NCBI GenBank assembly: GCA_964035545.1
Contig: OZ037766.1
Coordinates: forward strand, 23,424,767 to 23,488,766
From: Bugula neritina
Taxonomy: Eukaryota > Animalia > Bryozoa
DNA: 64,000 nt
Direction of reading: 5' to 3'
The notes under the pieces are model-generated. The model ran no database searches, was not told where the DNA came from, and saw only the letters and a list, made by a program, of their open reading frames with translations. Below are positions 3,659-52,090 of this stretch, in pieces. How positions within the stretch are numbered: the first letter of the stretch is position 1; every line of letters begins with the position of its first letter. Position numbers and translations under genes: made by a program.

Positions 3659-3701
3659 CTTCTTTCTACTCCCTGGCTGGGAGCACTTGTATTAAGTGGA
3701 G

Positions 3702-4120: not shown

Positions 4121-4163
4121 GAAATCCATTATACTCCAAACCCCCACCCCAATATTAGAAAGC

Positions 4164-6021: not shown

Positions 6022-6153
<132 letters not shown>

Positions 6154-6179
6154 TACAGATTAATCCAATACGCCCTAGG

Positions 6180-7660: not shown

Positions 7661-7667
7661 ATAGAAT

Positions 7668-12418: not shown

Positions 12419-12539
12419 CTTCTTGTTCTAGTGAATATTTTCCCTATAATAAAAAAGGAATGTTACTAATTATTCATTTATTACTTATAAAAAACAACGT
12501 GCACAATTCAGCCATCTATTAATTTAAGATATTTATGTT

Positions 12540-14160
12540 AAGTCGCCAGTAAGCAATAATCAATTCAGTAACTTCATAAGTAAAAGATAAGTCTATTATC
12601 ACCTTCAGATTATTAACTCTACTCATACTTCCATCAAACCTAAGTTCTCAACAACCAGAATCAATTGGAAAACAACAAAAAGAGACAGTCTATATGTCGT
12701 GTGACAAAACACTTATAAATGTTTTTTGGAATAAATTACGTGTTGCTACTTTCTATCCATACCAAATCAAGTTTGTAACATTAGCTCATATATGGAATGA
12801 TTATAAGATAGGTTATCAGGTCTAATTTAAATAAATTACAGAGAGTAGCACTTACATTTACTAAAAATAAAATACATTATCCTATATAAACAACTGCTAT
12901 CTAGTAGAGATAACAGTAATAATAATACCTATACTAATAATAATACTATTGCCAGACAGATCAATGAGTTTTATTATTATTCTGAGTTTAATTTCAAATT
13001 CATTTCATTATATTATAATTACAATTATATATAATAACGATGTTATATATGTATTTATCATTATTAGAAACTTTTATAAAATTCACAAGGGCGTATAGTT
13101 GCTATTCCTGTGAGAACCCCTGATCAAAAAGTTTATTTAGTGGGCCACGAATTTGTTTTCTATTGCCGTAACAGAGAAATTATGACTAAATGCCCTTCCT
13201 AACATCATCAATGTATGCTGTTACTAGTAGTAATTTAGTTTTACTGAATAGCCTAGCAGTTGAAGTGAAAAGAAGTTAGAGCTATGTTTAACTTTGACTT
13301 GTGCCTAAGGCTAATGAAGTATTATCAATACTAATAATCAATAGAGTATTAGTAATACTAGTAGTAATCGCTGTAACGACTAACGACATAGTCTGATTAG
13401 TAATAGTGAAGTGATAGTCTTACACAACTGATACTCATCTCAATCTGAATTTCATGATAATTAATAGTAATACGTTTATATTTAGTATTACTCATAGTAT
13501 TACTCTTAGTATCAGTATTACTAATGATTGTGGTTATCTGTTATTAACTATGTAGGCTATATTAGTAATTGGTACTAGTATCAAGTATTAAATCAAGAAT
13601 AAGTCCCCCACTTACTTGTACTTTCAGTTTAGAACTAATATTATGATTAACAATAATTTCAAGTTTAAGTTACTTTAGGTATCACAATGAATCATGATAA
13701 CAGTAACACTAACTATATCGACAGGTACCGGTAGCAACTGCAATATGAACATCATCATCGACATTACTTCATTATAATGATGCACATAATTATCATAAAT
13801 TAAGTAAATATCATTCTTCATTATCATTGGACAATACGCAAAACGAAAACTAAATCTTACTCTAAGAGTAAGAGTAAGACTAACTCTTACTCTAAGACTA
13901 AGTCTAAGAGTAAGTCACTAACTAAGTCACTTACAGTTACTAGCTGCAATTTTTAAAGTACCAGTATGGCTAAGAGTTATACTTACAGTAACACTAATTC
14001 ATTGATTAAGTAAGTTAGTAAGACTAAGAGGAAGTGTCCAGTTTAAATTAAATTGTGGTGACTGTTGAGACTTGGTCTCAAAGTTGAAACCGAACTCAAA
14101 CTGAAAGTTAAAAATTAAAGTTACTAAATACTATAACTATTAGTATTATTGTTAAAATTC
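12540..14160. other. 6-bp-periodic (TNA-NNN)n island, probably in the LMAN2 5'-UTR intron
   Basis: 11 consecutive in-register TNA units at 13851-13913 and many shorter runs. Candidate minus-strand acceptor near 12445. Confidence 0.75.
13094..13213 (-). mobile_element. Fragment of the same SINE family as 39279-39461
   Basis: Shared cctgtgagaa(a)cccc and tgact..atgc.cttcctaacatca.caatg. Confidence 0.65.
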
Positions 14161-14822
14161 ACAGAAAAAATGAATGTGTCAAACTGTAATTTACAGAATA
14201 TATTTTGATTGTTTTAGTTTACAAGCAAGTCGACGGTATTAAATTTTTTAAAGAACACAATAAATGATTTATATTTAAAATTAAATTTCAATTTGAGGTT
14301 TCAAAACTCAACTTCTGGTACTTTTTTGTTGTGGAAGGTACAAAAGCGATGACAGTTGTCGTAATTGATATGTAGATAGTATTTGAAAATGTGTGTATTC
14401 AAAAGCAGTAATAAGACGTCATTTGAAGTACAGAACCTAGTTTGTGTTTCTGAAAAACAAAACTTTTCCTTATGAGATTCACATGGCAGAAAAATAAATT
14501 TATCAGAACACGAACTAACACCCAAAATCCTATAAATTTCTAACGATTCTCAACTTAGTCTCCCCTCTACACCACCGTAGCTTTGTAAACATAAATTTTG
14601 GCTAGAAAATTGTGATTTGCCGACTACTTGGCTAAAAATGGTCTTTGATTAGTGTTTTACTAAATTTAACCGATTTAGCTTTTTCAGTTTTATAGGCAAT
14701 AGCAATAATTATATTTTCATAATAGTTAGGTAAGCATACGCTAAAAAAACAAAGATACACCGCCTTTTCTTTATCAAAAACAAGGCAACTAATTGATAAC
14801 AGTACCAAGGTCCAGAATCAGA
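14160..14822. promoter_or_regulatory. Inferred bidirectional promoter and 5'-UTR region for LMAN2 and NDUFS3
   Basis: Head-to-head gene arrangement; non-periodic core between two periodic islands. TSSs are not visible directly. Confidence 0.5.
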
Positions 14823-17800
14823 ATGGCAGTTGCTGCTGGAAGAATATTTTCTAATCACCTCCTGAGGAATTCGTTACGAAACTGTAAGTATAAGTTTTAC
14901 TCCAAGTCTAATGGGTGTGCTAAGTAGCAAAATACTACTGTTTTAGTTTTCTTTTTATGCTCATAGTCATACTGATACTGTAAGTGAAAAAATTATTGTA
15001 ATACCGACCAATAAAACTAAAAGTTAATCATAATGATAATGATAATCATAATATTATTATTAATGTAATTGTATAGTAATACTTATACACTTACATTTGT
15101 ACTTATAGTATTATGCTAGTACTAATTGTAGCTGACTCGTTCGAGTTAGACTTACAGTTACACTTCCTCCTAGACGTTGGATTTAATGCTATAGTTATCC
15201 TTATTAACTTTTGTTCATATTGATATTCATATTGGTGCTTGTATTGCATTCCTGTAAGGCTAAGTCAGTAAGACTAAATGGAACTATATGCAAGTGTAGT
15301 GCAAAGTGTAATATTGATAACTTTTTTTTAAAAAAATCGAAATACAGTTGAATTGTAATAACCCAGTAACTAAGAATAAGAATAACTGATTTAATGACTT
15401 TTGCTAAACTCAAAGTTAAATCACGTAATAGCTTTATGATTAAGAAGTACAAGAAGTAAATTAGTTTAATGCTTGTAGTTTATACTTATGTTACTAATCG
15501 TTGGAGTTTGACATTCAAAATAAAATAGAAGAAATAAAAAAGACTGTCAATAAACATGTATATGGCTATTCTCTAGGTGTGGCATCAGGTCTTCCAGGTT
15601 TAACTAAAGTGTGCAACCAGTTAAAGACAATTAATGTGCACAATAGCAGATGTGAACAGCTTCGCTATGAAACTAGTGAGTAGTAGTATAATTGTTGATA
15701 TAAACATAGTATCTATACTGTAACTTTTCTGTACTAACTCACTAAAAATTTACTAATTACTGTGGTGATTCACTAATTTTCCTATTCTTTATGTTGAAAT
15801 AAGTAGTAATTATTATATTATTACTGTATGTTATAAGATGTGTTAAATGCCTTGTCCAGGCTATTTGATTTAATTGTGTTACTAACATACATTAGTATTA
15901 GTAAACTTTTACTTTATGTATTAAGGTTTTATTTTAATGCATGTTTTATATAGCATTACTACATTATAATTTTATATCACTCTACTACTGTATATCTTGC
16001 TACCACCAGCTACAACTGTGAAAGAATCTGTACCACAAGCTAATGCACAGCTGGAGGAATACGGGAAAATGTGTGCTGAAGTTCTTCCTAAATATATCCA
16101 GGTTAGATATTGTAGTAGTTTTGTGGGTAGAATGAAATTAAGTGGGGAGCATAACTGCAGTATAGAAGAAACAAAGTATTTGTAGTCGAGAGAAGAAATC
16201 TTTATTGTATCAAAAGTAGCGTGTATAAGTAGGTCTGTATCCTACTCTGTGAGCTCGCCCCTTTATATACAGGGACAAAGCCCTTCTAGCAACTTCTACC
16301 GTTCCTGTCCAAAAGTCGGGCTTTCTGGCATTTTGTTGCGCTTGCCGATGTCAGAAAATACTCCGACTTTCGGACAGAATCGATTTAGACGATCATAACT
16401 GTTAAATGAAAGAATATAAAAATTTGAAAAGACAACTCTAGATAAAAGACACATTATACTATTATCGCAAATTTCCACTGCAATATTTCCTCTTTTTTTC
16501 AATGTAATGAGTTTTTTCTATGCAAATATATTGTTACACTCTTTTTGCATACATGTTTTGAGCGCATGCGTTAATATATTTACTCTTTTCTTTATGATTT
16601 AGATGTGGTTGTTTTTCAATGACATGCATTTATTCACGCTCTTCTTTTTTATACACTTATATAAATGCACTGTATTTGCCATGCTCTAGATGTTCATTAT
16701 ATTCTCTGTAGTGCCTTTATTCACTGCGTTTCCATGACTTTAAATTATGCGAATGGATGCTTGTACGGATGAATTTGTGGTTACAGTTTGCATGGGCTTA
16801 TAGTTGTAGCTTCATTCTGCAACTGTTTCCATATACAGAATGAAAAATCCATTCGAATAATGTGAAGCTTGGAAACATAGTGAGTGTAAGCCTAGTTATC
16901 TATATTTCACTATTTATATTGCAGAGAGCAGAAGTGACACAATTTGGGGAGCTCGAGCTATTGATACATCCTAGCGGAGTGATTCCAGTGACAACCTTCC
17001 TTAAGGATCACCACAATGGACAGTTTCTTAATCTTTCTGACATTGCAGGCATTGACATACCAGCCAAAACTAATAGATTTGAGGTGAAGTTATTTTACAA
17101 AATACAGCATTTTGCAAAATACAAAAGTTATTTTATAACTTTTTAGAAATTAGATTGAAATTTTTTTACTGAATTTTATCCAAGTATAATCTAAATAATG
17201 TTCTGTATTCCACATGAGTATAGATTATCATGGCATGCTTTGTAGATCGTGTATAATTTACTGTCACTGCGATATAACGCCAGAATTAGACTAAGAACAT
17301 ACACTGATGAACTGAGTCCAATTGATAGCCTGTGTTCTGTGTTTATCGCAGCTAACTGGTATGAAAGGGAGGTAGGCTAATTATACATTTAGTATTATTC
17401 TAATGTTTTTCATATTCCTCTTAATCATTGGAAAGGCATGTGGCCCGATCAGTAATGCAAAGTTGCATGTACTGTGCATATAATTGGTATCTAATATATG
17501 TAGACAAGGTGTTTCCATTTTTATTGTTGTTGCTCATCGGTTTTTTCATTAAATTTTGAGTTTAGGTTTTATATCTGTTGTTAACGCTTATTGTTACTGC
17601 TTTGCAAGTTACAGCTTTTTTGTTGTCATAGACATAGTGTTTAGTGAAACTTAGTGTAAGTTTTCTAATTAAATAGCCTTTACCAGATGTAATGTCTGTA
17701 GTATATGCAAACTATATTATTTATAAGATGCTATAACCCAAATATCACATATCATCATATAATTTACAGATCTGGGATATGTATGGTGTGTATTTTTCAA

Positions 17801-19219
17801 ACCATCCAGATCTTCGAAGAATTCTTACCGATTATGGATTTGAGGGGCATCCCCAGAGGAAGGATTTCCCCTTAAGTGGCTATGTGGAGGTAATTCTATA
17901 CATAGATGAGTGTTCAGGTGGTACTTTGCTCTACCCTGTTGGCCACACTGTTTATCTATAAACTTGATTACTCATTCTAATTTCCTAATATGCTCAATAT
18001 TCTTTTCTAATGAACTCCTAATTCTCAATCTGGATTCTTCCCAAGGATTAAGATCTAAATAGTGACAATCAGTTAAACTTATGTCAAATGAAAATTAAAC
18101 ACAAAATAAAATCAAGAGAGTATTTTTCCTCCACTGTCTAATTGTTGAGTACCAAAACATTCGTCTAGACTTTCATAAAACTAGTGAGGACAACTCTTCA
18201 TAAGTTTTATCTTGCAGCTTTCAAAGTTATATACTTTCGTACTTTGAACATTAAAGCAAAAAATTTTCAAGTGGTCGAGCTACCATATTTGTCCAATATC
18301 AATGAAGTTCTTCTTTCAAAATCTTTATTTGTTTTTTCGGCAATTGTGCTCTTTTTACTCTACAAATTCTTTTTCAACCTTCTTTGTCTAACTTGAAGTC
18401 TCTATGTTTTCCAATTGCATACCATGTTTAAATATCTATTATTACTTCATGGTTTCCAATGAGCTAAATACTGCAGTCATCACTGTATGCAAATATAGAT
18501 GAACTGCATATAAACATTGAATAATTATATTGCAATATATTTTTTTGTTTTACTTTATTTTTCAACATCGTAACTGCTTCTTTTTTTGTTGAATTCTCTT
18601 TAACCTTGAAGCTAATCTTTTTTAACAACTGCTGTAATAATGTGTTGTTTTCTCGGTTGACTGTGCTGGAAGTTTAGTTTGCTAAAAGATAGGAACAGCA
18701 ATTCTTTCATTGATAAATCATGCTTAACTCAAGGATGACTGTCAAACATTATCCTTTGAATTGCATAGATTAGAGAATTGCTGTCAAACTGATTTTCTTA
18801 AAAGCATTACTTTCTTCTCAATGTAATCAACAAGGTAGTTTTTTAGGATCACAAAGCTACCTTGAAAGTGACTCTGTAGTTAAGCAGTGCTCTCTATATG
18901 TAAATACATCAAGTTTGAGTCTTTTTAAGGAGATATTTTTTCTACTGGTAACGTTAGATAACCTCAACTATTTTATTAGCAAATAACCATGATTTCATGT
19001 ATGCACGCATGTTTTACTGTTCACTTGTAGATGAGATATGATGAAGATGTGAAAAGAGTTGTAGCTGAACCACTGGAATTAGCCCAAGAGTTTAGAAAGT
19101 TCGAGCTGGGTAGCGAGTGGGAGCAGTTCCCAGCTCATAGAAACAGAGAGGTGAAGGTGCGCCAAGTATCTCCAGGAGAGTCTTTCAAACAGGTTGCCAA
19201 GGAGGGTGAAGACAATTGA
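14823..19219 (+). CDS. NDUFS3: NADH:ubiquinone oxidoreductase core subunit S3 (30 kDa), 7 exons
   Basis: Mitochondrial-transit-like N-terminus; [85 protein letters not shown]. Approximate exons 14823-14883, 15577-15675, 16010-16101, 16926-17083, 17246-17371, 17770-17889, 19031-19219. Confidence 0.97.
14950..15900. other. 6-bp-periodic (TNA-NNN)n island in NDUFS3 introns 1-2
   Basis: For example TCA TAG TCA TAC TGA TAC near 14961; TCA TAA TGA TAA TGA TAA TCA TAA near 15028; TTA GAC TTA CAG TTA CAC near 15146. Confidence 0.65.
16299..16383. repeat. Short inverted-repeat (MITE-like) element
   Basis: ctgtccaaaagtcgg versus ccgactttcggacag (reverse complement ctgtccgaaagtcgg). Confidence 0.55.
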
Positions 19220-19594
19220 CAGTGTGATGATAATATGATGGATTAGTAACCATAATCTTATAACAAAGATGTGTTATGCCAGATTTTATTGTATTGTACA
19301 CCATAAAACTTGCTAAATAAGAAGAGTTTTCTGATAAGATTTGTACTGAACTGTAGTAAATTCAGTTGACTGATGTATAATAAATTATTGTCTGGTTTGT
19401 GATAAATGTGGCTTGTTACTATCAAGAGAAAGTTCTTGCTGGCATCTGGAGAGAGGTTATTCGTTGTCCAGTAAGTTATATTGAACGTGTTGCTCCTGTA
19501 ACAAGTGGAGCCATGGTTACCATATGCGAGGATATAATTTGTGTATTTCATGCTTTCAAATACAATACATGGTGCCCTAAAATAGTATGCTGAG

Positions 19595-22500
19595 TCATTG
19601 GCTCACCTCAATAACCTCATCTGGGTCAAACGGTTCATCCGCATCAATTTCGTTCAGGCTGATGCGACTAAAGGTCCTGGCAAATGATTCTCGTCTCATT
19701 CGCTCAAACCAGTTCTTATTTCGCTCAAAATACGAGCATTTCCTCTCTAATTTCCGTCTCCTCTTCTCACCAGAGTTCTTCTACACAAATTTCGTTTAAT
19801 CATTTTAAATAAACCTGCTAAGGTGCAGCATCAGCAATTTTGAAGTTGTGTTATATTCTCCAACTAGATAAAAAAAACAATTCCAAAAACTTATAATTGT
19901 ATCTGGTTCATTGGAAAAGGTTTTCGGGGCTAACTTTAAAAGAAATTGCATATGTTAATAATATTTTCTTTAATTTATTCTTTTTGTGAATAGCACCACA
20001 TAGGTAAAGCACATTTAAAATGTCTGGTGAAACAAACACTCAATTTTCCCCTAAATCTTTGAGTCGTCTTCAAAGTATATAATTTATGCTCTGAAAATGA
20101 TTTGTGTGAGGGACTTCAAGCATGTATGCATTTTAAAAATACTTCATGTAATTGCCACAATAAAAATTGGCTTGATATAAAAAATATTATAAATATTACT
20201 CAGCATCCATCATCACTTATTTACCAATGTTATAGACACTGTGCTATGTATGAGAATGTACTGGGTTTTAAAGTGAATTCGGCAATATCAATACTGTGTC
20301 AACATATCAAACTATTTAACTACGGACTGTTGGAGCTGACTTACAGATATAGTGGATGAGTTGAAGTTTTGAGAGGAGGCAACAGCAAGCAGGTTAACTG
20401 TAGGATCATTATCTGTTGTCAGTGCAGCATCGTAAGCCTGGTTTATGAGAAATGAAAGAGAATTACTTAATATGTGAATGCATACAAGTATATAATAAAG
20501 TAAGATCATCTCTTTATAATTAGTGTACATTATAGGAAAAAAAGCTGTTCAATATGGTACGCGGTGACAATTTGTTCATTTGATTATTTACGGCTAGTAA
20601 TAATCAAAGGCATATTACCGACTTAGGTGTATTTACCTTGAAAATTGTATTCTTCCATCTGGTACGGATTTTCTGATGCCGTTTCTGAATGCTTTTTGAT
20701 TTTGAATCAGGCGAACCAAAATGTGTACCATCTAGTTGAAGAATTGCCTAAACAAAAGATAAAAGTAACAGCAGCTCCTATCTGAACACGCATGCATATA
20801 TGCATATATAAAAGGATTATAGGCATTTTTTCATGTTTGAATATTCAAATTCTTGTAGAGACTCACCCCTAGCATGACTGTAACGACAATAATGAATGGT
20901 ACAAGTGAAATGAGAAAAGGAATTAGCCGAACTCTATCCCATTGCACAATCAATGAAGCTAAAAATATATATTTAGTATGATGAAAGTTATCTATTACAC
21001 AGAGAAGTTGTGACATAACATATCTTCATCACACTACGTTCTCATGATACATAATATTGTATAGTAGAATATAATATACATAGATCTTCTATAGCTTGGG
21101 CACAGCCGGAATCTATGTACTGATCTTTAGTGTAGGCCCTCAACTTGATGCAGTAGTCGGCACTATACTTCAGTTTTCCATTACAGTATTGACTCTTGAG
21201 TTTCCTGTCACATGTCTGAGAGCCAATGAGATAATCAACAGTTCTACCTGTGCATCACATCAACAATAATACACTTCATATTAATTATTTGTACATTATT
21301 CTCACATATCTCGCTTTGTCCTGTTCGGTAGTGGGATTATTTGCACATGTTACATTATACTATAACTAAGAATATGTACATTATATATACTTTTATATAT
21401 ATTTGCAATATATCTTGTATATCAAAATATTTCAATTCATTAGCAATATATTATGTATCATACACACTACTCTGACGATGACCGGGCTCAATCCACTGAA
21501 AGAGATTTTCATTAGTAACCACCACATCTTCCAAACCAATAGCTTCTTCCATACTCATATGTGCGTTATCCCCTCTAAATATTGGGTCTTTAGCTGCAAT
21601 GGCAGCAAATTCCAAGTTTACCGGCATGCGACTTCATAGAGTACACAATTTCGGTTACAAAGAAATAAAATATATAATGGCAGAACTGAAAAGTAATAGG
21701 CCAAAAACTTGTTTCAATTTGAGAACTATGTTTGTAACAGCTACTACAGTAGCGGCTCCTTATACCTGAATACGCTCTCTTTTTTCTCCCAACTTGAAAC
21801 TCGGCATGGAGAGCACCAGTAATGACATCTGGACATCCTGAACCGGTAAATAGCTGACATCTATCATGAATTAAATAAGGTGGCCAATAAGGATAGTCTT
21901 GAGCCTGCGATACCATATAAGGTAATAATAGTCAATGCATTTAAATATACTATAGTGAAATAATATCGCCCGTAGAATCATAGCATTTATTCACATGTAG
22001 GTAAGTATTACCCACAGCTGCCCAAGTAGTGAGGTTATCGGTAATGGTCCCCTCAATGTAACTTTGTGGTAGAAACTCATTTCGTTCAATAACAATGATG
22101 TTAAATAAATACACGCTGCCATTCAGTGGTGAAAAGATGTCAGTAAGACGCACTTCAATTGTACTTTCATCGGCATCAAAGTTCTTTAACCTAGAACTAA
22201 TAAAAATCAAAAAACGATGCAGTGATGCATATTACAGAGTTCTGTAACACACCATATGTCTCCATGCATGTGCTATAAAATATTGAGACAAAATATTATA
22301 ACTGCAATTTAAAGTAAGGTGCTATTAAATACAGAAATAACACTCAATTCTATAGTATATCACAGCATACTACAAAATATTACAGCATTCTGGACTGCGC
22401 AGTATACAGCAGTAACTCTGGTACACTGCAGAGCCCTACAATATACTAAAAAGCTACTCTAGCATTCTTTTATATTGTAGAAATCGTTGCAGCACATTTC

Positions 22501-25500
22501 AATACTAAGCATAAGCATTTCACTAAAATACCGAATGGGAGATCAACATACAATGTCTATTAGGTCCCTTCCACCTGTACATGAGCTATAGAAATCCGTA
22601 ACAAATAGAGACCTACCTACCTTGGTGATAGTATAGGAATCATATCCTCATATGTGAACCCATCAGCTACGGCTGGCTTTCCAGTTGGCAAATAAAAAGA
22701 AGCAGCAGGTTCTCCAAGCTTTCCATAAGCTTCCTCTTCCCAATCAAATATACTCCCATAGATCCATATATGGTAATTGAAACCAGGTGGCACTTTACTC
22801 TTTACTGTATGTATCTCTATAGCAACATGATGAATCATATGCATTAATGTGATTGTTCAAACAGCATATTATTGTAATGCCCAATGCTTAGCACCAGTAG
22901 AAAAATACAAAACAACTAAATCATTGCTCTCGCTGCTTCTACAGTCAAAGCACATCACATGAATCTGTGACTACTTTTTGATCCTAACAAGGAATAATTA
23001 CTCATAAGTATTCATGTAAGATCAAAACCTACTAGAGACAAGTTTGCTAATAGCAAATATTGAAATCGAATGTACATGAAATTATAAGCAGTTGATTTAA
23101 TTATCAACTGAGATAATACAATGTGATGGTACTAAAAAAGTAGGGAGTACTAACTAGAGCATCCTATAACCAAGGATTTGAATATAATATATATTATAAA
23201 GAATTTTAGCAATAAAATATATAATGTAATATAATAAAGATCAAGCATGTAATTTACCAGCATATACAAAATAAAATAATTCAAAATAATAGCTGTAATG
23301 CAAAATGAAATAATTTGTTATAGTGTAAAATAATATAATACACGAAACTCACTATTTGATCTAGAAGATGCATGACTTAGAGTAACATTGACTCTTATAT
23401 AATTCTTGTCATCTTTACCGATAAACCTGATACTGTAGTTAGCAATATCCTCTCTTTTATTATGTGTTGTGTTGGAGGAATTTAGACTGGATTTATTTTG
23501 AAATAAATTGGTGTTTAGCCAGGTTACAGTTACACTGCCGGGTTGGGAGGGGTCCACATCCACTATTGCACCATACTGGAGCTTGTAAGCTACAATGAGT
23601 TAGTGTAACAAGCTAATAGATAAAATATTGTCCCATAATGCACCAGGTACCGCAAAATCTAACAAATGGTGCAAAATTTGTCTGTACTACTGTATAAATA
23701 TAATATATATTTTTTTAAAAAAAATCATTTAGATGCAGTAGCGAAGAAATTGACATAGCTTATGTTCTTTAATTTTATTATTAAATTTTGGTTTGGGTAT
23801 ATAACTTTCTTTGCTAAATTTTTAATCTAGAACGCAAGCTTTTTTCAATTTCTCTATCACTGTACTTACCTCAGAAAAAGGTTCATATGAAATTTATTGC
23901 AACAGAGTGGAAGTCAACGTCTTACACAGATGCAAAAGGTTTTGTTTGTGAATGTTTGAAGGCAATCTTACTGTAGCAAATGTGTTCATCTGAGCCCATC
24001 CATTGGCCATAATCATTACAGGTTTTAACAATTTCATTTCTACCATCAAAGATAGAAGACCCAACAAACACATGGTGTGGGTAGCATCTTACAGTTACAC
24101 TATCTCCACTGTAGTAGATTGTTTGAGGGTTTAGTACTTCGGCTCTAACAAGATTTTTGATTTGAGGGCATTTTATACCTGCAACACAATAAATTAATAG
24201 CTTCACCTTTGTTTACACATTCCCTACTTTTAGCTGTTTACACATTTGCATTGGCAATGTTTAAGTAGTTAAATCTTTAAATATTTCATGCATACAAGGA
24301 AAACTTACATGAACACCGTAAGTTTTTCAGTAGTTACTTACGTGTGCACTGTAAATTTTGCCAGTTTAGCCACGATCCTTGAGTGTCACAATAACTATTA
24401 AAAGTTTGTTTGTAAAATGTGTCCGCCTAAAAGTATATATAAAATCTTTAGCAGCAGCTTCAAAAAGAACTATTTATTGCCATAATTTTTAAATTTTCCT
24501 TAATGGTGTAGTAAGAATAATTAACCAGACTGTACTTATAGTACATAGGTAGTTCTAGATAAGATACATACTACAGCACTGATAGGTAAGTAGCTATAGA
24601 TAAATGTGAAGACTCCATAAAGCCCATTTAGCATATCCACACAATAACAATAATAACTTTAAGTATTGAACAGGCAGAGGGATTGCAACTCCTACAGACA
24701 CTTGTCAATAACTATATTTAAACACTTGTTTTTTTCACCAAAGTTTTCAAGAAAAGAATTGCTAATCTAAATATGTCTTTGGGCTGTTTCTTTTAGTATA
24801 GCATTTAGATTATATATTATCCTATTATTTCATATCATACCCACAAAGACTAAAACAGATACAGTGAGAAACGGTGAAAGAGTTTTATATTATACCAATC
24901 TATTTTAATAATGCCAAGGCTCAGAACAGAGTTATAACAAATAAATTGAACAATTCTGCTACAAAAAAGCACCAAAAGCTTACTTAAAATAGAATTTCAT
25001 TAAAACTATATTTTAACTGCACATTACACAATAATACAGGCCTACATTTTATTTTGTTTTGAAAGCTTTACAAAATATATTTTACAAAGAATTTGACTAC
25101 GGGAACTTTTTAAGTCTATGCTGCCTTGATAATTTTTCTATTTATAATGCAGCATAAATGATATCACAAATTCTACTAAAGAATAATTCTACTGACTATG
25201 TAAGGGTAAAACTTACTAGAATACCATAACCTCCGTCACAGACCACTTGTATTTCATCATCAACAAGATAAGCTCTAGATTTATTTAGACCAACAACTCT
25301 ACCATTTGGTATCACAAGAGGGGGGTCGCTACACACCCTAGCTGAAGAAATATAGCTTTGTCAGAGAAAAATCTACATATATTATGGATGTATATATGTG
25401 GTATATATTAAATATTACAATAAAAAATGGACACAGTATTGATGTTTACGAAAATCTTACAAAAGAAGTAATATTCTCATAGTACCTTTAAATTAAATAA

Positions 25501-28500
25501 CGAACTAAAACTCATGCAATATGAAACACTACATTGAAGTTTGTCTGCTATTTCTATTACTGCAATTGCTTAAAAATGCATGCCGTGATTACCTTGCAAA
25601 ACTGTCACAGATCAGTCTGATTGACCAACTATAAAACCCGAATTTATCTATAAGCAGCTCCGAGTTGGGGGTGACTGAGTGCAGTAGTTTAGAACTTTTA
25701 ACCTTAATTCCAAACTCAAGAACCCTTAACTACATCACTCAGTTACCCCCAACTAGGAGCTGCTTATAGATCAATTCGATGACAACAGGCTTGACCAGTG
25801 CAGTTCATATTTTAATAGATAGATTAGTCAGCCAGGGTGAAGGTCTCAGATTATATTCCCACCTGTGCATTCTAATAAGGAGTCACCAACCCAAGTTTTA
25901 TTTTCTGAACAGAACAATGAGAGTTGTCTTCTTCCTGTGTATCTATCTTGGTAGCCTGGGACACACTGATATGTTAGATTGGAGCCAATAGCCTGAGCTT
26001 TGAACCCTGAAGAAATGTAGCTGTGTGCAGTGGGTTGTGGAGGTAGATCGCAAGTCTTGGCTAATAAGCAATAAAATATACGATTACTACATTAGTGTTA
26101 GTTCATTGAGAAATGGCACGATGCCTGTATGCTTAGACAATATAATATAAATGTCTTAAATTTTAGCTAATAATCATTCAGTACATAAAAAGAGGTGGTT
26201 TATAAATCCATTTAGTGCAGAGTTTACATGGATATATATCCCGATACAACCAAGAAGTAAATTATAGATTTCTATAATATTAGTTTTTGTCTATTGCTTA
26301 TAAGGACTTTTTTTGTTTAAAGTCTTGCATAAAAAAACTCTTATACTGCTTTTGTTCATAAAAAATTTCACAAGTCAACTTTTTTATTAACGACCTCAAA
26401 ACTTGTTGCTGTTGTTCAACTTTAGCTTTAAGCAGGCTAGTCAATACAGGGTTATAGGTACAGTATAAGAGAGCTGAGAATTTCTTAATGTTGTATTTAT
26501 TATACAGCAAAAAATTGTATAAGTTTATAAAGTGTTGAATGAATTGCTATTAATAAAGTTCAAACCCGAGCACTTCTAAATATTTCTTAGAAAAACTGTA
26601 AGTGTTAGATTGTAATGGGTAGTATACATCAACACTGAACATCAATTGGAGAATTGTTAACATAAATACAATAAGAGCTACACAAAATGCTTATATATAT
26701 TAAACATTCAAATCTTTAGATAAAGTTTCATAGCTTCAGAATCACTATGCAGCACTTTTAACTTTAAATAATAACACATGATGACACAGAAATCCGACAA
26801 AAATGTGAGAGCCTATAGCAAATTGTCATTTGAACTGAATCAATTTCTCAAAGAGATGTATCCATGCAGCCCCCAACTGGCCAACTTTTTAAAAACAAAT
26901 TTTGAAAACTAAAAATTGCCCAGTTCAAATTTCACCAATTGACATATAATGAACTCACGTTCACAGCTTCTCATTCCCGCAAACCCACTTCCTGTCACAT
27001 TAACAATAAGTGTCCGTACTCCGGTTTCAAACTCATGTTCCTCGTCACACTGCAGAATTAGCTTATCTCCTGGAAACACAGCATCTTGAATTCTTCTTCT
27101 TTCAGCCAGCATAGCCTCAGTAGCTAGCTCCACAACTTTAGTCTGGTTCCATAATATATGCAGGTAGCGAGATTGCAGACTAAGATAATGAAACTCTCTA
27201 CCTAGAAAAAAAACTACTAGAAAGTAAATTGTGTTTATTGTATTTTTGCAAGCCGCATACTCTTGTTAGAGAAAATAAACTCACCAATACAAATAGGTGG
27301 TCTGCTACTCCAAGTTCCATTGGGAAGGCAGACTGTAGTCATGGAAGTTTGGTTTGTTCCGTCTATTAATAGATCTGACTCACAGGTGTAGGTTAATTTA
27401 TCGCCAACGACATAAATAATTCCTTTAATAATTCTTTTGCCGCTGGTGAATGTAGAGATAAAAGAAAAGGGTCCACTCAATGGTGCTGAGCAGTTATTGG
27501 CTAAAACAGAGTGTTGGGCTTAAGCTATGGTTCTGGTGAATTTTATAGCACAAGAAGTTGCCTATTTACCGAATAAATTTAACAAAACCATCAGTAAACT
27601 TAAAAGTTAAACTAAAATGTGTAAGGCTAAGTTAAATAAAAATCTACAGTTGTATCATAGCCAGAGAAAGGTCATAACTTGAGTATAAGAAAATATTGTT
27701 GGTTTAAATATTATTAAGTTAACAACACCTCCAATTAGGTTAATTCGTTTAGGTATACTGTAAGCAAATACATACGGATGCATTGAATATTATGATAAAT
27801 CTGCCAATTAGAACTCATGTTGCATGAAAATACTGCAGCCTCATTTCCATTCACCATTCTATATCCAGTATCACAATGTATCTTAACATGTGACGGGTCA
27901 GGAAATTCTGCTGCAGCGTGCTTTACATTGTGACGGAGAAAACAGCAAAATTCTACAAAAATGTTCAAATAGCTTATAGAAAAGTTGGTTTAAAGCTTGA
28001 AGAAACTTCATAGAATAATTACTTTATAAATTTAGATACTAACCACTTTGTTCAGGTTGGTTACCATGACAACCAGTACAAAATCGATTCTTAGCTGAAC
28101 AGGGCTTCGTACGTTTCCTCACATAATTATAGCATGGCTGCCATTCTGTCCAATCAGCCCACTCCCCTAATAAACGAGAAATCGCAAAGTAAACAAACTA
28201 AGAATTTCTAATGTAAAAAACTAAGTTTTGGCCCTTTTATTTCTTCCAATTTTGATTTGATTCAGAGAAAGACAGCTGTTTACAATTAAAATACATCTTT
28301 TGTTAAAAACAACATTATAAATAAATAAAAAAAAACAAGATTTCAATAGCTACTTTTGCTATACTCTACAATATTTTGGGTACAACTGTATTTAGACTAC
28401 ATAAAGCCAATAGCTTTAAATTTTCATTAACTACAAAGCATTGTTAAAATACTAATTCTTTTAGGGGACAACAAATTAACACTAAGGCTCGTTCCTTAGA

Positions 28501-33463: not shown

Positions 33464-33539
<76 letters not shown>

Positions 33540-33596
33540 TACTCTGTTCTGTGCTGATGAGGGGACAAATCCTGAAACAGCTGCTGTCCACAGATT

Positions 33597-33659
<63 letters not shown>

Positions 33660-34470: not shown

Positions 34471-35002
34471 CAGTTTATAGCAATATCATCATACACCTGG
34501 GAGAGGCTTGTAATGTATGATTTATCCTAGCATTATAGACAATGCAAATGTGTGCATGATGTCAAACAAACCTAACATTATTGTGTTGCTTCAATTGGTT
34601 AAAGCTAATTTTATTAGTATTGTTTTGTGGCAACAATGCTGTGTAATTGCAGCATGATGCTCTAAAAATGTCTGATGGATGATACCATAGCATCATTAGA
34701 AACAAATAATAAACAAAGATAATTCAGTTTGATATGCTGGTTTGTTAACAAGAGGGTATTGTCAGGCGTATTTGCTTTAATATAGTAAATAATATAGTTA
34801 ATAATATGTCATTGGTTATTCCATCAATAGCTAAGTAGCAATCGGGGTGTCAGAAGTGGTAATTAGGAGTTGTGTTTATAAGAAGGCCGTTTATTTTACC
34901 ATTGGAAGAATGGATCAGGACATGCTCCTACCCAAATGGTATGAGCCCACTTGCACCTAAAAATGCCTCTTTGACTTTAACGTGACAATCACATGATGTA
35001 AA

Positions 35003-40688
<5,686 letters not shown>

Positions 40689-41138
40689 CTGAATGCTGCC
40701 TGCTAAGGCACATGGCATTAGCTAATAACCTTTGATGAATATACCATTATGATATATACAAAACACTGTATTATAGCCAATAAGTTACAACTAGGTTATG
40801 AGGTCATGGTATTGTATTTTTTGATTGGAATATACATTACAACCTGGTAACATTTATCATTACTTTATATTAAACAAAGTTTAATTACTATAATTATTAT
40901 TCATACCAGCAATTATATACTTTCAATAAAAAACTATTCTGAACTTTGTAATATAAATTAGTGTCAAAATCATAAAACTCATAAGCAGAGCAAATTTAGT
41001 TGAATGAAAAGGAACTGTTATGATACAAGTGGCCTATAGTGTTACACAAAGTAAGTTATTTAAAGATAGCCTAAGAGTAAATGAGTAGCGTACGCAGCAG
41101 GCAATGAAAAACTAGGGTCGACTTGGAAGCCCCCAATA

Positions 41139-44100
41139 CTACTGTGTCCTGCACTGCATTCCTCCTCCATCACCGTGGTCCATTTCTTCGTCTTCAGCCG
41201 CGTGGCCTGACTGTCTAGAAGAATGATAGGGATGCAGATCTACCTCTTCATACTCTTCATTATCCTCAGGTGGGGGAGCACGCTCCGGCAGCAACTTCTC
41301 CAACATCTTAATACACAACACCACAATATTTAATACTGTATTTCACATATTACATTATTGTGTACATGTATGTACTATATTAGTGTGTTGGTTACATCAA
41401 ATTCAGAGTTTAAACTGAAAACTTTATCAGAATTGACTCAAGACATGTTTGCACAAAATTTATTATAAAAATTTTTGTGCATACAACCCTCAAACAATCT
41501 GTAGGTGATAGCTATGATAAATATAAATATTTTATTACTGCATAGATAAAGTGCGCCAGAGACTCTTTAACTATTACATGGAGCTCTATTAGACTAAGCA
41601 GAAAGAGAGAAAATAAACAATTGATATTGCTGTTGTAGTAAACAGTGACCTTAGTTCCCCATTTTTAGTATTAGAGTAATATCATTGTATTGTAAACTCA
41701 CAGTTAGCTGTTGTTCACCAGCAAACCCATCTTCAGGGAACTGTACATGAAAGTTGATAATGAGGTCTCCTTTACGGAATGGATTTTTGTGAGTCGGCAT
41801 CCCTTCTCCCATGACAACCTTACTAGACTCTAAGGAAACAGAAACATGCAGACATACACATAGACGTATACAAATACATACATTAACATATAAATAAATA
41901 TATACACAGGCACACACATAGATGTACACACAATATAAGCACAGATCAATTATATGATACATAGACATATGTATGTCAAAGATATACATCCGCAAAAAAT
42001 TGAGATGACGCATAACATAGGCCAAGACCACAGAGGCAAATCGAACATATTGTGTACAGTGAAAAATGACCGTAATACGTATAGTACAAAGAGAAATAGA
42101 CGTTGTACAGCTATGCAGAATAAGTCTACAGTGCTTAAACATAGAAACCTGGCTGTATAACTGCTCCTGGCGGTGATTTGACGAGAAGTTCTCTATTGTC
42201 TAGATGCTTGAGGGTGAATTCAAAGCCGCACAAGGCTTCTGTCAGCCCGATGTTACGAGTACAGTAGAGGTCTGAGCCCTTGCGAGTGAAGACGTCATGC
42301 TCCTCCATATTCAACACAATGATTACATCACCTGGTTCTATCCCAGGCTGCATAATACAAAATATTTGCATTAACATAGCTAACCAGAACTAGTCACTAT
42401 CTAATAAACATATTTTTAATGTGAAAGGAAAGCAACATTTTATCTACATATCTAATTAACGAAGGCCAGGATCAAAATGCCTTAATTTATATATCAATCT
42501 AAGTGATGGCCAATTCACATAGTCTAATATGTGAATTGTTGACCTACCATTTGATCAGCTTCCCCTCTTAGTGGAATCTTCTGTCCATCAACCATTCCTT
42601 TGTCAACATGAATCTCAAAGACTTTACTCTCTTTAATTGTTTTTTTGCCATTACACGCACCACATCTTTCATTTTCAGGTATGACTTGTCCTGCACACAA
42701 ATACAACACAATTGGTCTAATCACTCTAATGTTTAAATATACTCTGCGGCCTACTGTATAAAGAAATAATATATTGCTGAAGTGACACTAAAACTCTATT
42801 TTATAGATACATAGAAACAACGCACATAGATCATTCTTATTATCTTAAATTACCTTCGCCATCACAGTTTGAACATGTTGCTTGTAGTTGTTGAACCATT
42901 CCTGGACCCAACGGTCTCAAGTGAACTGTCACACCCCGACCCTTGCAAATTTCACAAGTTCTACTTCGACCTGTTTTACTGCCTAATCTACAACACACAC
43001 ACAGGCGCCATCAACAAGTCATAGGATGAATTAAAAACTGATAGTACTAATCACTAACCTCAACATTTCAAAGTGGTGATATAAACTATCTTGACATCAT
43101 CTACACTCAACTTTGAAACACAAAAAAAATGGAAAATAAGAACCAACCCTTTACAAGTTGCACATATCACAGTCTTGCTTAATTTCAGCTTGGAAGTTTT
43201 GCCGTTATACAAGTCTTCTAATGTTACCCTGAAAACAGTAAAACATATGTTGTGGTAGTTGAACATAAAACCCAAAAGAGAGTCATAAAAGCAAGTAAAA
43301 CTTGGTACCAAAACCAGCTGACTGGAGCCAATTCTGCAAAACTATATTAGAGAAGAAAATGAGAATAAGCTGTAAGGTAACCATAGTAAAAGGCTACACC
43401 AAATTATAGTAAGAATTTAATACAGAGAGTTAGTTTACACCAAAAAAATGACCCGACAAAACCGCTAGCATTGTCTACATTTTGTCTCAATTCAGAAAAT
43501 CTTAAAATTCAAATTTTCGTTAGCCCGCCATCAGCTGTTATTTTGGGGCTTAGTTTATTCGAGAGTACCATTAAACAGATATGTACAATCAACAAATGCA
43601 GGCCACCATATTGTTTTTAAACTCACAACTACAGATTTGTCACAATAACTTTATTCAATTTTAGGAAACAGTGATAAAAGCTGTTTGTCCCCCTTTAATA
43701 ACTTCCCCTCCCCATAAAATATTTTAATGTATAAAAACTATAATAGCTCAAAATAAAATACAACCAATTGAAATCAAACCAATCCTAGTACCCACTCATA
43801 ATAAACTGGATGAATACACAGCCAAATGTGTCAACTTACTTTAACGGGTGCAACACATCTCGACCTCTGGGAGGACCTCGTCTACCACCCCTACCTCCAA
43901 AAAGCCCTCCAAACATACCACCAAACAGGTCACCAAAGGGATCAAAATCTACAAAAAGTAATATATAACAAAGAACTGTAACAATAAAGTATGGTTATCC
44001 AATTATTCTAAGCAGCCTAGACAAAATGTATATGCAGCTCTGATATAAATCCTGAAGACAGATAGACATACGACTGAAAGCACTTACCATGACTACCTCT

Positions 44101-44434
44101 TCCTTCCTGCAAGCCCTCTAGCCCAAATCTGTCATAATTTTTACGTCTTTCAGGATCTGATAAGACTTCATAGGCATAGTTGATTTCTTTGATTTTCTCG
44201 CCGTGATTAGGATTTTTATCGGGGTGATACTTTTTGGCCAATTTTCTGTAGACCTACCCAAAACAAGTTCCTCATCATTTCTCAGAGGAATATCCCAAGC
44301 CACAATATAAAATGCTAAATAAGAATATGTTGATGATTTGAATAAAACTTTAGTACTAAACATACTGATTTCAGCTGATCACCCGAAACATCAGGCTGCA
44401 CTCCCAGGATATCATACAGTTGAGTATCAGGCAT
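41139..44434 (-). CDS. DNAJA2: Type I Hsp40 co-chaperone, DNAJA2-like, 9 coding exons
   Basis: [12 protein letters not shown]; J-domain YHPDKNP; G/F-rich exon; [18 protein letters not shown]; four CxxC zinc-finger motifs; EPGDVII; C-terminal CAAX CRTQ. Confidence 0.92.
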
Positions 44435-45050
44435 GGTCCCACAGACTGGATGTTAACACAAATATAACAATTTAACCTGTAAATAAAAATGCGTGAAAAT
44501 TGTGTAGCCTAAAAACCTTCATAATTCTTGAGTCAGACAAGCAAAGTTCTTAAAATGTGATTAAATACAAAGTTGCAACAGTCAATCTATTTAGTTGAAA
44601 GAGAAAATACAATAACTTAAAGTAAAGTCAAATACATAGCCATTGTACCACATCTAGAATCCTTCAGCAAAAGGATATAATACAGCAACCACAACAATGA
44701 AAACTTTTGCAATATTATTACTAGCAAACATTCTTTTGAAAATGTTGTGCAATTATACATGTTAAAGAAATTAACTTTATTCTAATATTATTGTCCTTAA
44801 CTAAAAACATGCTTTAAATTATCGATTATAAAAACTTGGTCACTTGTAAAATTAAAACTGAACTTGGATGATTGTAGTATAATTATGTATTGCATTATGG
44901 CATTGTTTGCTATACAAGCTTTTCACTAAATAGTTAATGTTTATGTATATACTGATTTTAATCTGCCTATGCTATTTAATTAGTTAACATGTCCTGTGCA
45001 CAATAAAACGTATTTATCATAATCCTACAACATTTTTGAGAGCTATAGAA

Positions 45051-45519
45051 CAGGGTTGGAGTCAATTACATATGAATGAAATCAATGACAAGAGAATTTG
45101 TCAATTACAATTATAATTACAGTTGAAATAAATGTGACTAATTACAATTACTATTACTTTTTTCTCACAAGAGACAAATAAAAGTTATAAAATCTCACTT
45201 CTGGGGTCCAACAACTCGGGGCAATTTTGACAACAAAAAACCGTCCTTGTTCTCCAGAGTAATGAATAGGGTGATAAGTACGACATTACATTAATCTGAA
45301 CTTTTTATTAAACAGTAGACAATGCTGGAAAAATGTGAATACTATAAGATTTAAAAATTTGAAGTAATTGTTATGTAATTATAAAATTCAATTATATTAG
45401 CAATGTAATTAATTATAATTACATTTTTATATATAAATTTCAAATTATATTCAATTACTTGAAAAAATGTAATTAATCACAACCAAATACAATTACAAAT
45501 TACAATTACCTCAACCCTG
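45051..45519. mobile_element. hAT-type MITE with 8-bp target-site duplication
   Basis: CTATAGAA|CAGGGTTG ... CAACCCTG|CTATAGAA; subterminal AATTAC/GTAATT arrays. Confidence 0.9.
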
Positions 45520-45699
45520 CTATAGAATTAGTATTATGATACCAATGTGGTGCTCATCTTTGCCTTCAAACACATATATTTTATTTATTACATATGACCT
45601 ATCCGTAGAAAGCCTACCATTGCATATTCGTTTTAATTCTGAGAAAAATTAAGAATTAAATAATATAACATAACAATCATAACAAAGTCTTTACTTTCT

Positions 45700-47770
45700 T
45701 AAAAAAATGCATCATTGTGTTTATAATGATATTCATAGTGATTACTGGCACTTGTCAATTGTGATTGTCACTTGATGATCATGATAGCCGAGATTGATAG
45801 TGATGGTGATGATGAACACCGCCATACTATTTGATCAAATGATGAATTACTTTATAGTTAAATTAAATTTCAAGTTTATCAAATTAAAATTGACAATTTA
45901 AATTTCACAGTTGAATATTTTTAGAACTGGTATAGTTATACCATTAGACTTAGTATTAGTATTACTATTAATATTAATATAGCTAAACTTAATGTTATCC
46001 TTAATTTCTTATACTTAATCTTACAGTTATCCTTAATACTTATTTACTAATAGTAATACTATTACTGTAGTAGTATTTAGTCATACTAATACTGACTGTA
46101 ATAGTAATACTAATACTTACAGTTACTCTTACTAAGAGTAAGAGTCTTACTCTTATTAACCCTTAGACTTATAATTATAATATTAATTATATTAAATCTA
46201 ATGCCAGTTTAGCTCAAACGATCACCATGATTGGGTAAATACGCTAAAACTCAAACGTAAAAGTTAAAGGCTCTTCTTAAGTAAAACTTCAAAGTCTAAA
46301 GTCAAAATAAAACTCTAGTCTTCCTTAGTGAGTGACTCAGTCTGAGTCAAACTCAAAGTGAAACTGAAACTGTAAATTTCTAGTTGAATTATCAATTATC
46401 AATATTATGATTGCAAACGGTTCAGGTTGTTGAGTAAAATGTATGATGCCAAAATAACCATTATTACTAGACCACCGTTGCTCATTAGTAATTATGATTA
46501 TTGATAACGGTTGACAATTTTAATTCTACAAGTACAGTGGCTATGGACAATCACAATGGACAATGAATAATCACGGTACTACTACAATATACAGATTTGA
46601 CGGAAGTAGAGACTGATGCTCGGACTTTCAGTCAGCGTATTTTCTTTGTAAATCAATCTCAACACAACAAACTCAAATAACATATAAAAATTATTGCGGC
46701 TTCCAGACTACAAAATATAAACCTCTTAGCCCGTAAGGTATGAAAATAGGAATACACTGGAGGTTTGGGTAAAATCTGGGTAAATTTAAACCCCCAGACA
46801 CTCGTCCTAAATTTAATGAACGCTTATTATTATAACGCCTAAGCCCTAAAGTAAAGTGTATACTAAATTACTAACTAAATATAGTGGAAAGACTTAAATG
46901 ACAAATACAGCTGCTTTATAATTATATCACGTCAATTATCACTCTGGGAGAGCAGTCGCTGAAGTTTTAAGTTTAAAACTAAGAATTAAACTAAAACTAA
47001 AAGTGTAAAAGTAAAACATTTTTATTTAATTTTGTGTTATTCATATTGTTACGCTTTCACTTTGACTTCGGCTTGCTCATCATCTTACTTTTAATCTAAG
47101 TATAAATAATACAGTTACTTTAATGTTATACTTATAGTTATTGTAGAAAAACTGAGGTAATTCTAATTGTGATTTTGGAAACTGAATCTGATCACTGATG
47201 GTGATTTCTCAGGCTCATAAGATTAAGTAAAGTATGAGCCATGCTGAGTCTGATGCTAAGTAATAGTTTGTTTTATAATTATAGCAATACTAATACTATA
47301 AATCTAATGCTAATAGTAGTACTAATAGTAATACTCATACTGGTAGTAATAGTAATACCCACACTGATAGTGATTGTCACTTACTAGGACTTACACTTAC
47401 ACTGTTACAGTGACACTAACAACTAACTGATAGTGATATATTCTTACTCTTAGTGATTTACTTTTACTTTTACTTTTAGTGATGGACTGATTTTCATATT
47501 AAATCTTATAGTAGTATCGATATTCATACTCGTAGCACTAGGAGTTGGTCTAGCCCTGGCCTCTAGTAATACTAATAGTAATACCAATTATCATAATCAA
47601 TATGACAATGACTATAATATATTCATATTGATAATCATTAAATTTAATTGACGATTATTACTATAAATATAATGATTCAATCAATAAATTTGAATCATGA
47701 TTAAGTTTGCTATTTAGTTTGACATTACTTATAATGATAATTATATTAAGTATTTATATTATTATTAAAG
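45700..47770. other. Two-armed 6-bp-periodic (TNA-NNN)n island around the inferred divergent promoter of DNAJA2 and the plus-strand gene (non-periodic core ~46570-46950)
   Basis: 9 in-register units at 46081-46131 and a long register at 47305-47379. The core contains CGGAAGT (46601) and a plus-strand donor AAG|GTATGA (~46738). Confidence 0.72.
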
Positions 47771-48844: not shown

Positions 48845-49026
48845 ATATCCGACTCCCTTCATATCTTACGATTCCATAGGTCTCGAGAAGGGCTTGAAAC
48901 CCTGTTTTGTGACTTATGTATATGTGTATAGACACAAAATAGCCAAATTTAACGACTCTGGCTTTCTACTATGTCATGAATCAAAATTTTGGGACCGCAG
49001 CTTAGTGAGATAAGGAGGGAGCACTG
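48845..49026. mobile_element. Second, inverted copy of the Tc1/mariner-type MITE at 37998-38193
   Basis: Its reverse complement shares cagtgct.c.tc, cacaaaac.ggg...caagcccttctcg.gacctatgg. Confidence 0.7.
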
Positions 49027-51879: not shown

Positions 51880-52090
51880 AAAGTATTACCACCCACACAG
51901 AGTAATACATGTTCCACCACACACAGAGTAATACATGTTCCACCACACACAGAGTAATACATGTTCCACCACACACAGAGTAATACATGTTCCACCACAC
52001 ACAGAGTAATACATGTTCCACCACACACAGAGTAATACATGTTATACCAGACACAGGGTAATACCTGTCATACCACATACAGAGTAAATA
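51880..52090. repeat. Minisatellite, 26-bp unit (agagtaatacatgttccaccacacac), ~5 near-perfect copies plus degenerate flanks
   Basis: Direct inspection. Confidence 0.95.

Follow-up and report, generated by a model that had tools for sequence, protein, structure and literature searches.

A hexamer lattice in the promoter-proximal introns of housekeeping-type genes of the bryozoan Bugula neritina

The periodic An/Tn clusters (PATCs) of Caenorhabditis elegans are the nearest described analogue of the DNA reported here, a set of 6-bp-periodic tracts in a 64-kb stretch of the genome of the bryozoan Bugula neritina (C2:23,424,767-23,488,766 of genome set G000). This whole stretch is called the window below, and its own numbering is used. 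Both classes are lineage-specific, kilobase-scale, periodic AT-rich intronic DNA, and both are defined by a grammar and not by alignable sequence. PATCs belong to germline or broadly expressed genes, and the identities of the genes with tracts (LMAN2, NDUFS3, PEPD, DNAJA2, a JADE-like gene and ASH2L) fit this description, their expression being judged from identity only. The two classes differ in period, which is 6 bp in Bugula and not the 10-bp helical repeat of PATCs, so no phased bending is expected of the Bugula tracts. They differ in placement, the Bugula tracts being anchored to about 1 kb behind the first exon whereas PATCs spread through introns, and a sublattice rule that leaves C/G orientation free is found only in the Bugula tracts, which are known here from sequence alone. 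A recent study derives PATCs from minisatellites carried by transposons and then remodelled by transcription-coupled mutation (bioRxiv 10.64898/2026.08.08.743475).

Several other systems share some of these properties. CpG islands are also a compositional signature of about 1 kb at the 5′ end of housekeeping genes, but the tracts are AT-rich (G+C 27-30%), CpG-poor (observed/expected 0.42, which does not define a CpG island) and periodic, and they follow exon 1 and leave the promoter core untouched. CpG islands are widely thought to be partly a passive outcome of germline chromatin state. Hexanucleotide micro- and minisatellites and cryptically simple DNA have head-to-tail units, similarity that decays with distance and length changes in unit multiples, whereas the tracts have an uninherited C/G orientation, few perfect repeats, a grammar common to thousands of loci and anchoring to gene starts. 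Transposons of the hAT/Ac type prefer gene 5′ ends and leave excision footprints in which the target duplication is retained with complement-flipped bases; in contrast, the local hAT family makes 8-bp duplications, and the tracts lack palindromic additions and have complement changes at all C/G positions. Intron-mediated enhancement in plants reportedly relies on a redundant, dispersed signal in introns less than about 1 kb from the start of constitutively expressed genes. It resembles the tracts as a promoter-proximal intronic signal at constitutively expressed genes, but the plant signal is a compositional motif bias and the Bugula signal a periodic lattice. No description of a hexamer-lattice class was found in the literature.

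The hexamer lattice is a real, genome-wide sequence class. Its tracts are promoter-proximal, AT-rich, cryptically tandem DNA that takes up the first 0.7-1.4 kb of the transcribed region, in the first intron, skipping exons and lying on both sides of divergent promoters. An initial annotation, made from the letters of the window, had described a T-N-A triplet recurring every 6 bp at three loci. T-N-A autocorrelation was scored against 100 dinucleotide-preserving shuffles for each region. At lag 6 the observed/expected ratio was 2.31 at 12540-15900 (z 9.3), 3.53 at 35000-36100 (z 9.9) and 3.86 at 45700-47800 (z 16.4), and lags 12 and 18 were likewise above expectation in all three loci. No lag-6 excess was detected in the controls 4000-12500, 16000-35000, 36100-45000 and 48000-64000 (observed/expected 0.81-0.97, z negative). 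The described pattern is therefore confirmed, with z of 9-16 and with the lag-6 excess confined to the three loci. No lag-7 or lag-8 signal was found in the T-N-A autocorrelation, and the tracts showed neither a lag-10 peak nor raised period-10 Fourier power. Base-wise Fourier power is insensitive to the tract periodicity because the phase drifts along a tract.

A pattern of four consecutive TNANWN units (W, A or T) had 99 matches in the window versus 2.5 ± 2.2 in shuffles (shuffle maximum 10), and 96 of them fell inside 12963-15050, 35033-35908 and 45721-47751. The matches come as plus/minus pairs with a 2-nt offset. On a finer map the periodic arms lie at 12.9-13.1, 13.3-14.3, 14.9-15.5 (weaker to about 15.95), 35.0-35.9, 45.7-46.4 and 46.9-47.8 kb. 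Cores without periodicity lie at 14.3-14.8 and 46.4-46.9 kb, as expected from the earlier description of a non-periodic promoter core between the arms. Tandem Repeats Finder reported periods of 6, 12, 18, 24 and 30 within tracts only, as for a head-to-tail tandem array. BLAST between tracts gave only short high-scoring pairs (up to 83 bp at about 85% and up to 261 bp at about 72%) in many registers and both orientations. This similarity is a shared low-complexity motif and not a defined element; the tracts are not alignable over a defined length and have no defined ends, as a dispersed repeat or transposon family would be. The view that the loci share a grammar without being one satellite or transposon family is upheld by this result. 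Strand symmetry, also put forward in the initial annotation, holds relative to transcription, with a GC skew of 0.005, an AT skew of -0.04 and similar motif counts in sense and antisense to the gene (e.g. GTAAG 15 vs CTTAC 14).

A phase-tracking hidden Markov model gave the repeat unit as T (0.90), W/n, A (0.79), n, A/T (0.92), S (0.82), where S is C or G. The commonest words were TAATAC, TAATAG and their complements, all about equal in frequency. C and G were isolated in the tracts, 84% of C/G runs having length 1, and A/T runs of length 1, 3 and 5 were enriched while those of length 2, 4 and 6 were depleted. Up to lag 24 the C/G (S-S) autocorrelation exceeded 1 at even lags, with peaks at 6, 12 and 18, and stayed under 1 at odd ones. 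The model, the run lengths and the autocorrelation together therefore define the unit as T-n-A-n-W-n, with an A/T skeleton on one sublattice and the free positions on the other. Every second base is A or T, C and G are restricted to the other sublattice, and T-N-A is one projection of this unit. In-phase neighbouring units had an identity of 0.48-0.56 versus 0.28-0.37 for distant units of the same tract, and likeness fell with lag. Exact runs of 12 or more at lag 6 were depleted, with 6 observed versus 15.0 ± 3.2 under a C/G-flip null, and exact runs at lags 18 and 24 were slightly above that null.

The A/T skeleton is copied between adjacent units and the choice between C and G is not. In the window tracts all four C/G pairs were enriched alike at lag 6 (C-C 2.07, C-G 1.87, G-C 1.70, G-G 1.98), whereas T-T (1.54) and A-A (1.53) were enriched and T-A (0.72) and A-T (0.71) depleted. 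The neighbour of a unit with C at a free position had C there at a frequency of 0.34, G at 0.33, A at 0.18 and T at 0.16. In every unit class C/G positions flipped in about half of neighbour pairs and A/T positions seldom flipped, and the differences between neighbouring units in tracts showed no transition bias. In units with two C/G positions both were random and mutually independent, and no base within ±12 bore on the choice of C or G. Across the genome, pairs of the commonest unit numbered CC 6,711, CG 13,455, GG 8,018 and GC 10,390, that is, 38% in the same orientation, while A/T orientation was the same in 38,574 pairs versus about 5,300 flipped (about 88% the same). After C,G the third unit had C in 3,161 or G in 3,544 cases (47% vs 53%), and inheritance of 12-mers (two units) as the cause of C/G alternation was rejected on this count. 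Adjacent units agree in their A/T skeleton and in where C/G occurs, and whether C or G stands there is essentially a coin flip. We know of no mechanism that explains the sublattice rule and this coin flip.

Genome-wide counts were taken over 216,009,554 bases in 321 contigs; the published B. neritina assembly has 216.00 Mb in 9 chromosomes (PMC11480708). A pattern of six units had 25,398 + 25,399 matches (about 50,800), where arithmetic from base composition gives a chance expectation of about a few tens. A satellite of 41-bp period at G000:C1:1332407-1332829, whose unit contains TATTAGTAATAG, adds a few matches to the genome-wide word counts. The first 100 six-unit matches formed about 22 clusters in 755 kb, about one cluster per 34 kb, which corresponds to several thousand loci. 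Five random 40-kb stretches (200 kb in total) were sampled, and three of the five contained tracts, at three further promoter-like cores. One sampled tract has an arm in the 5′ intron of a JADE-like EPL1/PHD gene, whose divergent reprolysin/ADAM-like neighbour has no tract, and another flanks ASH2L. Tracts were 0.7-1.4 kb long, began at the first exon-intron junction and took up an estimated 2.5-7% of the DNA sampled; among random 100-bp bins, 2.4% scored as strongly periodic. The sample C5_7M (L029-L032) also contains, at about 31300-35000, a long array of an 18-bp-related repeat (AAATAGYACAGCTACTAC / AACCAGCACAGCTACTAC), which may be coding and is unrelated to the tracts. The proposal that the tracts mark housekeeping-type genes fits LMAN2, NDUFS3, PEPD, DNAJA2, the JADE-like gene and ASH2L, and the Sushi-repeat and ADAM-like neighbours have no tract. 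The transcription starts and the expression breadth of these genes are presumed.

In the window the tracts had been placed in first introns beside the starts of LMAN2, NDUFS3, PEPD, DNAJA2 and an unnamed plus-strand gene. This location is supported for the four named genes, for two of them by way of putative introns in the 5′ untranslated region (5′UTR). The first coding exon of LMAN2 (12292..12443, minus strand), read from the sequence, contains the ATG at 12418-12416, a signal peptide and a GTAAGT donor, and a pyrimidine-tract/AG acceptor ends at 12444; a downstream exon at 11404-11691 on the same strand has a Lectin_leg-like match (E 5e-32). DNAJA2 (minus strand) has an acceptor at 44477, the ATG at 44434-44432 and a DnaJ_C exon identified with Pfam. 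Because the ATG exons of both genes have good upstream acceptors (12444, 44477), the tracts are assigned to the promoter-proximal ends of putative 5′UTR introns. Tract A-left (12900..14300, minus strand) lies in the LMAN2 intron according to the lag-6 maps and to pattern matches at 12963-14296. Non-periodic DNA breaks it at about 13100-13300; this DNA includes part of a high-copy repeat (depth spike, loose ends at 13174 and 13213). The donor region of the first LMAN2 exon (ACAG/GTAAGTTATTGTACCTGCTAAT, the slash marking the junction) is duplicated in tandem at 12244-12297 (26 bp x 2.1, 100% identity), giving two identical candidate 5′ splice sites.

The core at 14300..14822, between the divergent LMAN2 and NDUFS3 starts, has no lag-6 signal and would contain the presumed promoters and a presumed LMAN2 5′UTR exon. 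NDUFS3 exon 1 (14823..14883, plus strand), read from the sequence, runs from the ATG to the donor AACT/GTAAGT (donor 14884), and tract A-right (14884..15576, plus strand) in intron 1 is periodic right from the donor site. Exon 2 (15577-15675, plus strand) interrupts the periodic domain, and a weaker periodic continuation is seen in intron 2 (15676..15950, plus strand) in the sequence and in the T-N-A density table. Since the tract resumes, more weakly, past exon 2, the domain tracks distance from the start and not a single intron. The pattern had not been noticed in later introns or in 48-64 kb; no lag-6 excess was detected there, except for the weaker signal in NDUFS3 intron 2.

PEPD, identified by its AMP_N and Peptidase_M24 exons (Pfam), lies on the plus strand with exon 1 at 35003-35019 (ATG at 35003, donor 35020) and exon 2 at 36411-36594. 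Tract B (35020..35910, plus strand; lag-6 signal and pattern matches at 35033-35908) makes up the 5′ 0.9 kb of intron 1, and the final 0.5 kb of this intron is without periodicity. Its divergent neighbour, a Sushi-repeat gene (minus strand, 23.9-28 kb; Pfam), has no tract. Tract C-left (45700..46400, minus strand) is the promoter-proximal 0.7 kb of the putative DNAJA2 5′UTR intron, the core without periodicity (46400..46900) separates DNAJA2 from a presumed plus-strand gene, and tract C-right (46900..47760), on the plus-strand side, is defined by the lag-6 signal and pattern matches. No Pfam match was found downstream of tract C-right, where the fifth gene of the earlier list would lie. Elsewhere in the window, a Gypsy-type retrotransposon with protease, reverse transcriptase and RNase H occupies 1-3700 on the minus strand, with 55-60% G+C in a genome of 35% G+C. 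The tract-free right third holds minisatellites at 51889-52087, 54139-54301, 60025-60371 and 60906-61019, with periods of 26, 41, 23 and 23 bp and 90-95% matches.

Orthologous sequence of window 12301-18300 was recovered from the runs X2, X3 and X6, one set being labelled as a symbiont metagenome (2016) and the other coming from the study of a near-identical run. A search for runs returned none recorded as RNA, and the runs compared behaved as genomic contigs. At 6-9% divergence and with many gaps, the orthologous sequence would fit a sibling lineage within the Bugula neritina complex. Tracts had 8.4-9.2% mismatch and many gaps, versus 5.4-7.4% mismatch in other introns. The tracts thus diverge at least as much as other introns, so their exact sequence is not conserved. 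A stretch of 385 bp at 16111-16495 in an NDUFS3 intron, which overlaps a high-copy repeat, is skipped in the X2, X3 and X6 contigs, with 11 other letters in its place; this is an insertion/deletion polymorphism. The only relative recovered, an ENA metagenome contig (L033:560-840), contains PEPD exon 2 at 69% DNA identity. Directly after this exon it has a different low-complexity tract, which is ACTA/CAGC-rich with a period of about 3.3/10, not 6.

A hAT-type miniature inverted-repeat transposable element (MITE) lies at 45051..45519, in the same DNAJA2 intron as tract C-left and adjoining it. Its terminal repeat is CAGGGTTGG... (also given as CAGGGTTGGGGTCAATTAC) and its 8-bp target duplication is CTATAGAA. 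At least 675 candidate copies are present in the genome, with 8-bp duplications in at least 5 copies, and the copies examined (L002-L012) were 78-87% identical to the window copy. AATTAC/GTAATT hexamers abound in the interior, and most private indels are 6 bp long, with 6-bp indels seen in hexamer runs. Seven of 11 other copies lay within 1.5 kb of a tract. The copies serve as a control of foreign DNA within the zones and beyond them. Whether in a tract, close to one or away from any, they had the same ordinary spectrum, with transitions at 60-65% and C<->G at 4-5%, and per-site A<->T and C<->G rates were similar. Since the spectra are equal and ordinary everywhere, the C/G anomaly lies in the making of the tract and not in the point mutation of the zone. 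Zone-wide C<->G hypermutation was rejected on the same spectra. Mining of higher-order repeats in the tracts was too noisy for a mutation spectrum.

We lean, with some reserve, towards the explanation that the tracts are a footprint left in the 5′ transcribed zone by local duplication or break repair of a sequence-specific kind. The process would be recurrent and strand-symmetric and limited to this zone in genes that are active in the germ or stem lineage, and its footprint would accumulate as the tract. Each event would copy the A/T skeleton of the adjacent unit in register, set the C/G pair afresh and yield another copy of its own preferred target, so that tracts would grow until the accessible zone is filled. 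The enzyme might be a cut-and-paste transposase or some other nuclease with staggered cutting. The tract would then record where DNA is accessible and broken and would not be a code read by a protein. Local growth (seen in neighbour likeness, in the exact runs at lags 18 and 24 and in the 6-bp indels of MITE copies), the uninherited C/G, the ordinary point mutation of the zone and the lack of sequence conservation may be cited in favour of this explanation, which we put close to, though not up to, an even chance. The same lattice grammar everywhere indicates a sequence-specific process, and the strand symmetry relative to transcription indicates that it acts at the DNA level. The zone of the tracts is a known kind of transposon target, as judged from the share of MITE copies near a tract when set against the 2.4% of random bins. 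To our knowledge, the signature of a copied A/T skeleton with C/G orientation drawn again matches no described mechanism.

Several observations weigh against this explanation. The unit of mutation was deduced from statistics only, and no single growth event was observed. No enzyme or element with a matching target duplication of 5-7 bp was found, and the sole transposon characterised makes 8-bp duplications. A footprint model does not account for the period-2 sublattice rule. Because two C/G positions in a unit are random and independent, one new base per event would need two registers. A growth model with complement flips reproduces the pair statistic (at 80% flipping, 0.618 opposite); for the third unit, however, its simulation predicts 0.585 and 0.47 was observed. 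Models with a TA target plus one leftover base, or with a 3-bp target plus 3-bp filler, conflict with the A/T run lengths and the copied positions. Moreover, the uniform genome-wide grammar and the gene-class specificity are equally expected of a selected element.

Selection is the second explanation to be considered and is possible at perhaps a chance in four by our reckoning. The lattice would be a cis-element, a promoter-proximal mark of constitutively active genes that is read regardless of C/G orientation through the minor groove, DNA shape or mechanics, nucleosomes or an array-binding protein. As a functional DNA-encoded element of bryozoans, kept by a strand-blind chromatin, topological or array-binding reader, it might be a third mark of housekeeping genes beside CpG islands and PATCs, and we hold this, too, as a possibility that falls clearly behind the duplication or repair process. 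The uniform grammar at thousands of independent loci argues for it, as do the fixed position and similar length behind the first exons of housekeeping-type genes and the absence of tracts at tissue-type neighbours. The C/G class is kept with its orientation free, which shape or minor-groove read-out could tolerate, and the shortage of perfect tandem repeats and of palindromes able to form hairpins looks like an avoidance of instability. PATCs offer a precedent of periodic intronic DNA that protects germline genes (bioRxiv 10.64898/2026.08.08.743475). However, divergence in the tracts is no slower than in other intron DNA and brings more gaps, and the 6-bp period does not match the helical repeat. 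The analysis gave no evidence for the earlier suggestions of a tandem zinc-finger or polymerising reader or of a chromatin-setting signal. Minimal duplex stability was rejected as a selected property, the predicted nearest-neighbour stability being only about 1% below composition-matched shuffles; with so small an effect, and with C and G mixed on each strand, the tracts do not qualify as base-unpairing or scaffold-attachment DNA. Avoidance of poly(A) signals was rejected as well, the depletion being weak (a 22% deficit versus mononucleotide shuffles, little different from controls). Finally, per-site A<->T changes in MITE copies are about as frequent as C<->G changes, and therefore selection on base class alone fails to explain why A/T orientation is remembered and C/G orientation forgotten.

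Ordinary replication slippage is less probable again. According to this explanation the tracts are a hexanucleotide micro- or minisatellite, subject to neutral point mutation, that lies in first introns incidentally. The tandem periods of 6-30 restricted to tracts, the decay of neighbour similarity with distance and the 6-bp indels in hexamer runs of MITE copies all agree with it. Slippage copies whole units, yet the same orientation is far rarer for C/G than for A/T, and long exact lag-6 runs are depleted under the C/G-flip null. Differences between neighbours lack the transition bias that MITE copies show in the same places. Slippage would also amplify any local seed, yet the same grammar recurs at unrelated loci, and the strict anchoring to the first exon is left unexplained. 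Promoter-linked slippage or mutation bias, one of the alternatives in the initial annotation, comes closest to the duplication or repair process favoured here, but in the form of plain slippage it fails the test of C/G orientation.

It is doubtful, and more so than slippage, that the tracts are stacked excision scars of a hairpin-forming hAT-type transposon, which would have left 6-base duplications with junction bases flipped to the complement. Complement-type differences do dominate between neighbouring units, hAT MITEs are enriched beside tracts, and a flip model reproduces the genome-wide 62% of opposite pairs. However, the family at this locus makes 8-bp and not 6-bp duplications, and no signal was seen at lags 7 and 8. 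Flips occur at every C/G position independently, are not confined to junctions and are rare at A/T, and the third-unit statistic misses the prediction of the flip model. Hairpin opening should leave short palindromes, but these show no enrichment and in part a deficit. Palindromisation through hairpins or cruciforms was likewise rejected, short palindromes being not enriched and those with odd loops depleted versus an orientation-randomised null.

A function in the pre-mRNA, as decoy donors or branch points, U1 sites or dense stop codons, is very improbable: the units look like GTAAGT donors and like CTAAC/CTAAT branch sites, a donor stands at the start of the NDUFS3 tract and poly(A) hexamers number 13 in sense versus 26 in antisense in the window arms (small numbers), but each motif is equally frequent in antisense and base skews are near 0, and this strand symmetry disfavours the stop-codon and branch-point-decoy alternatives raised earlier.

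Plain slippage, hAT hairpin scars and an RNA function each fail at least one direct test, and what remains is a duplication or repair process or selection on an orientation-blind lattice. Of these two the former is our tentative preference and the latter the less likely. If the tracts are a mutational footprint, they would be a readable, kilobase-long record of breakage or duplication linked to transcription starts in an animal germ or stem lineage. If they are selected, they would be a new sequence-encoded mark of active genes. Either way, gene starts in the Bugula neritina genome could be predicted from the tracts by sequence alone, and the tracts offer a testable system for how promoter-proximal chromatin shapes DNA sequence.

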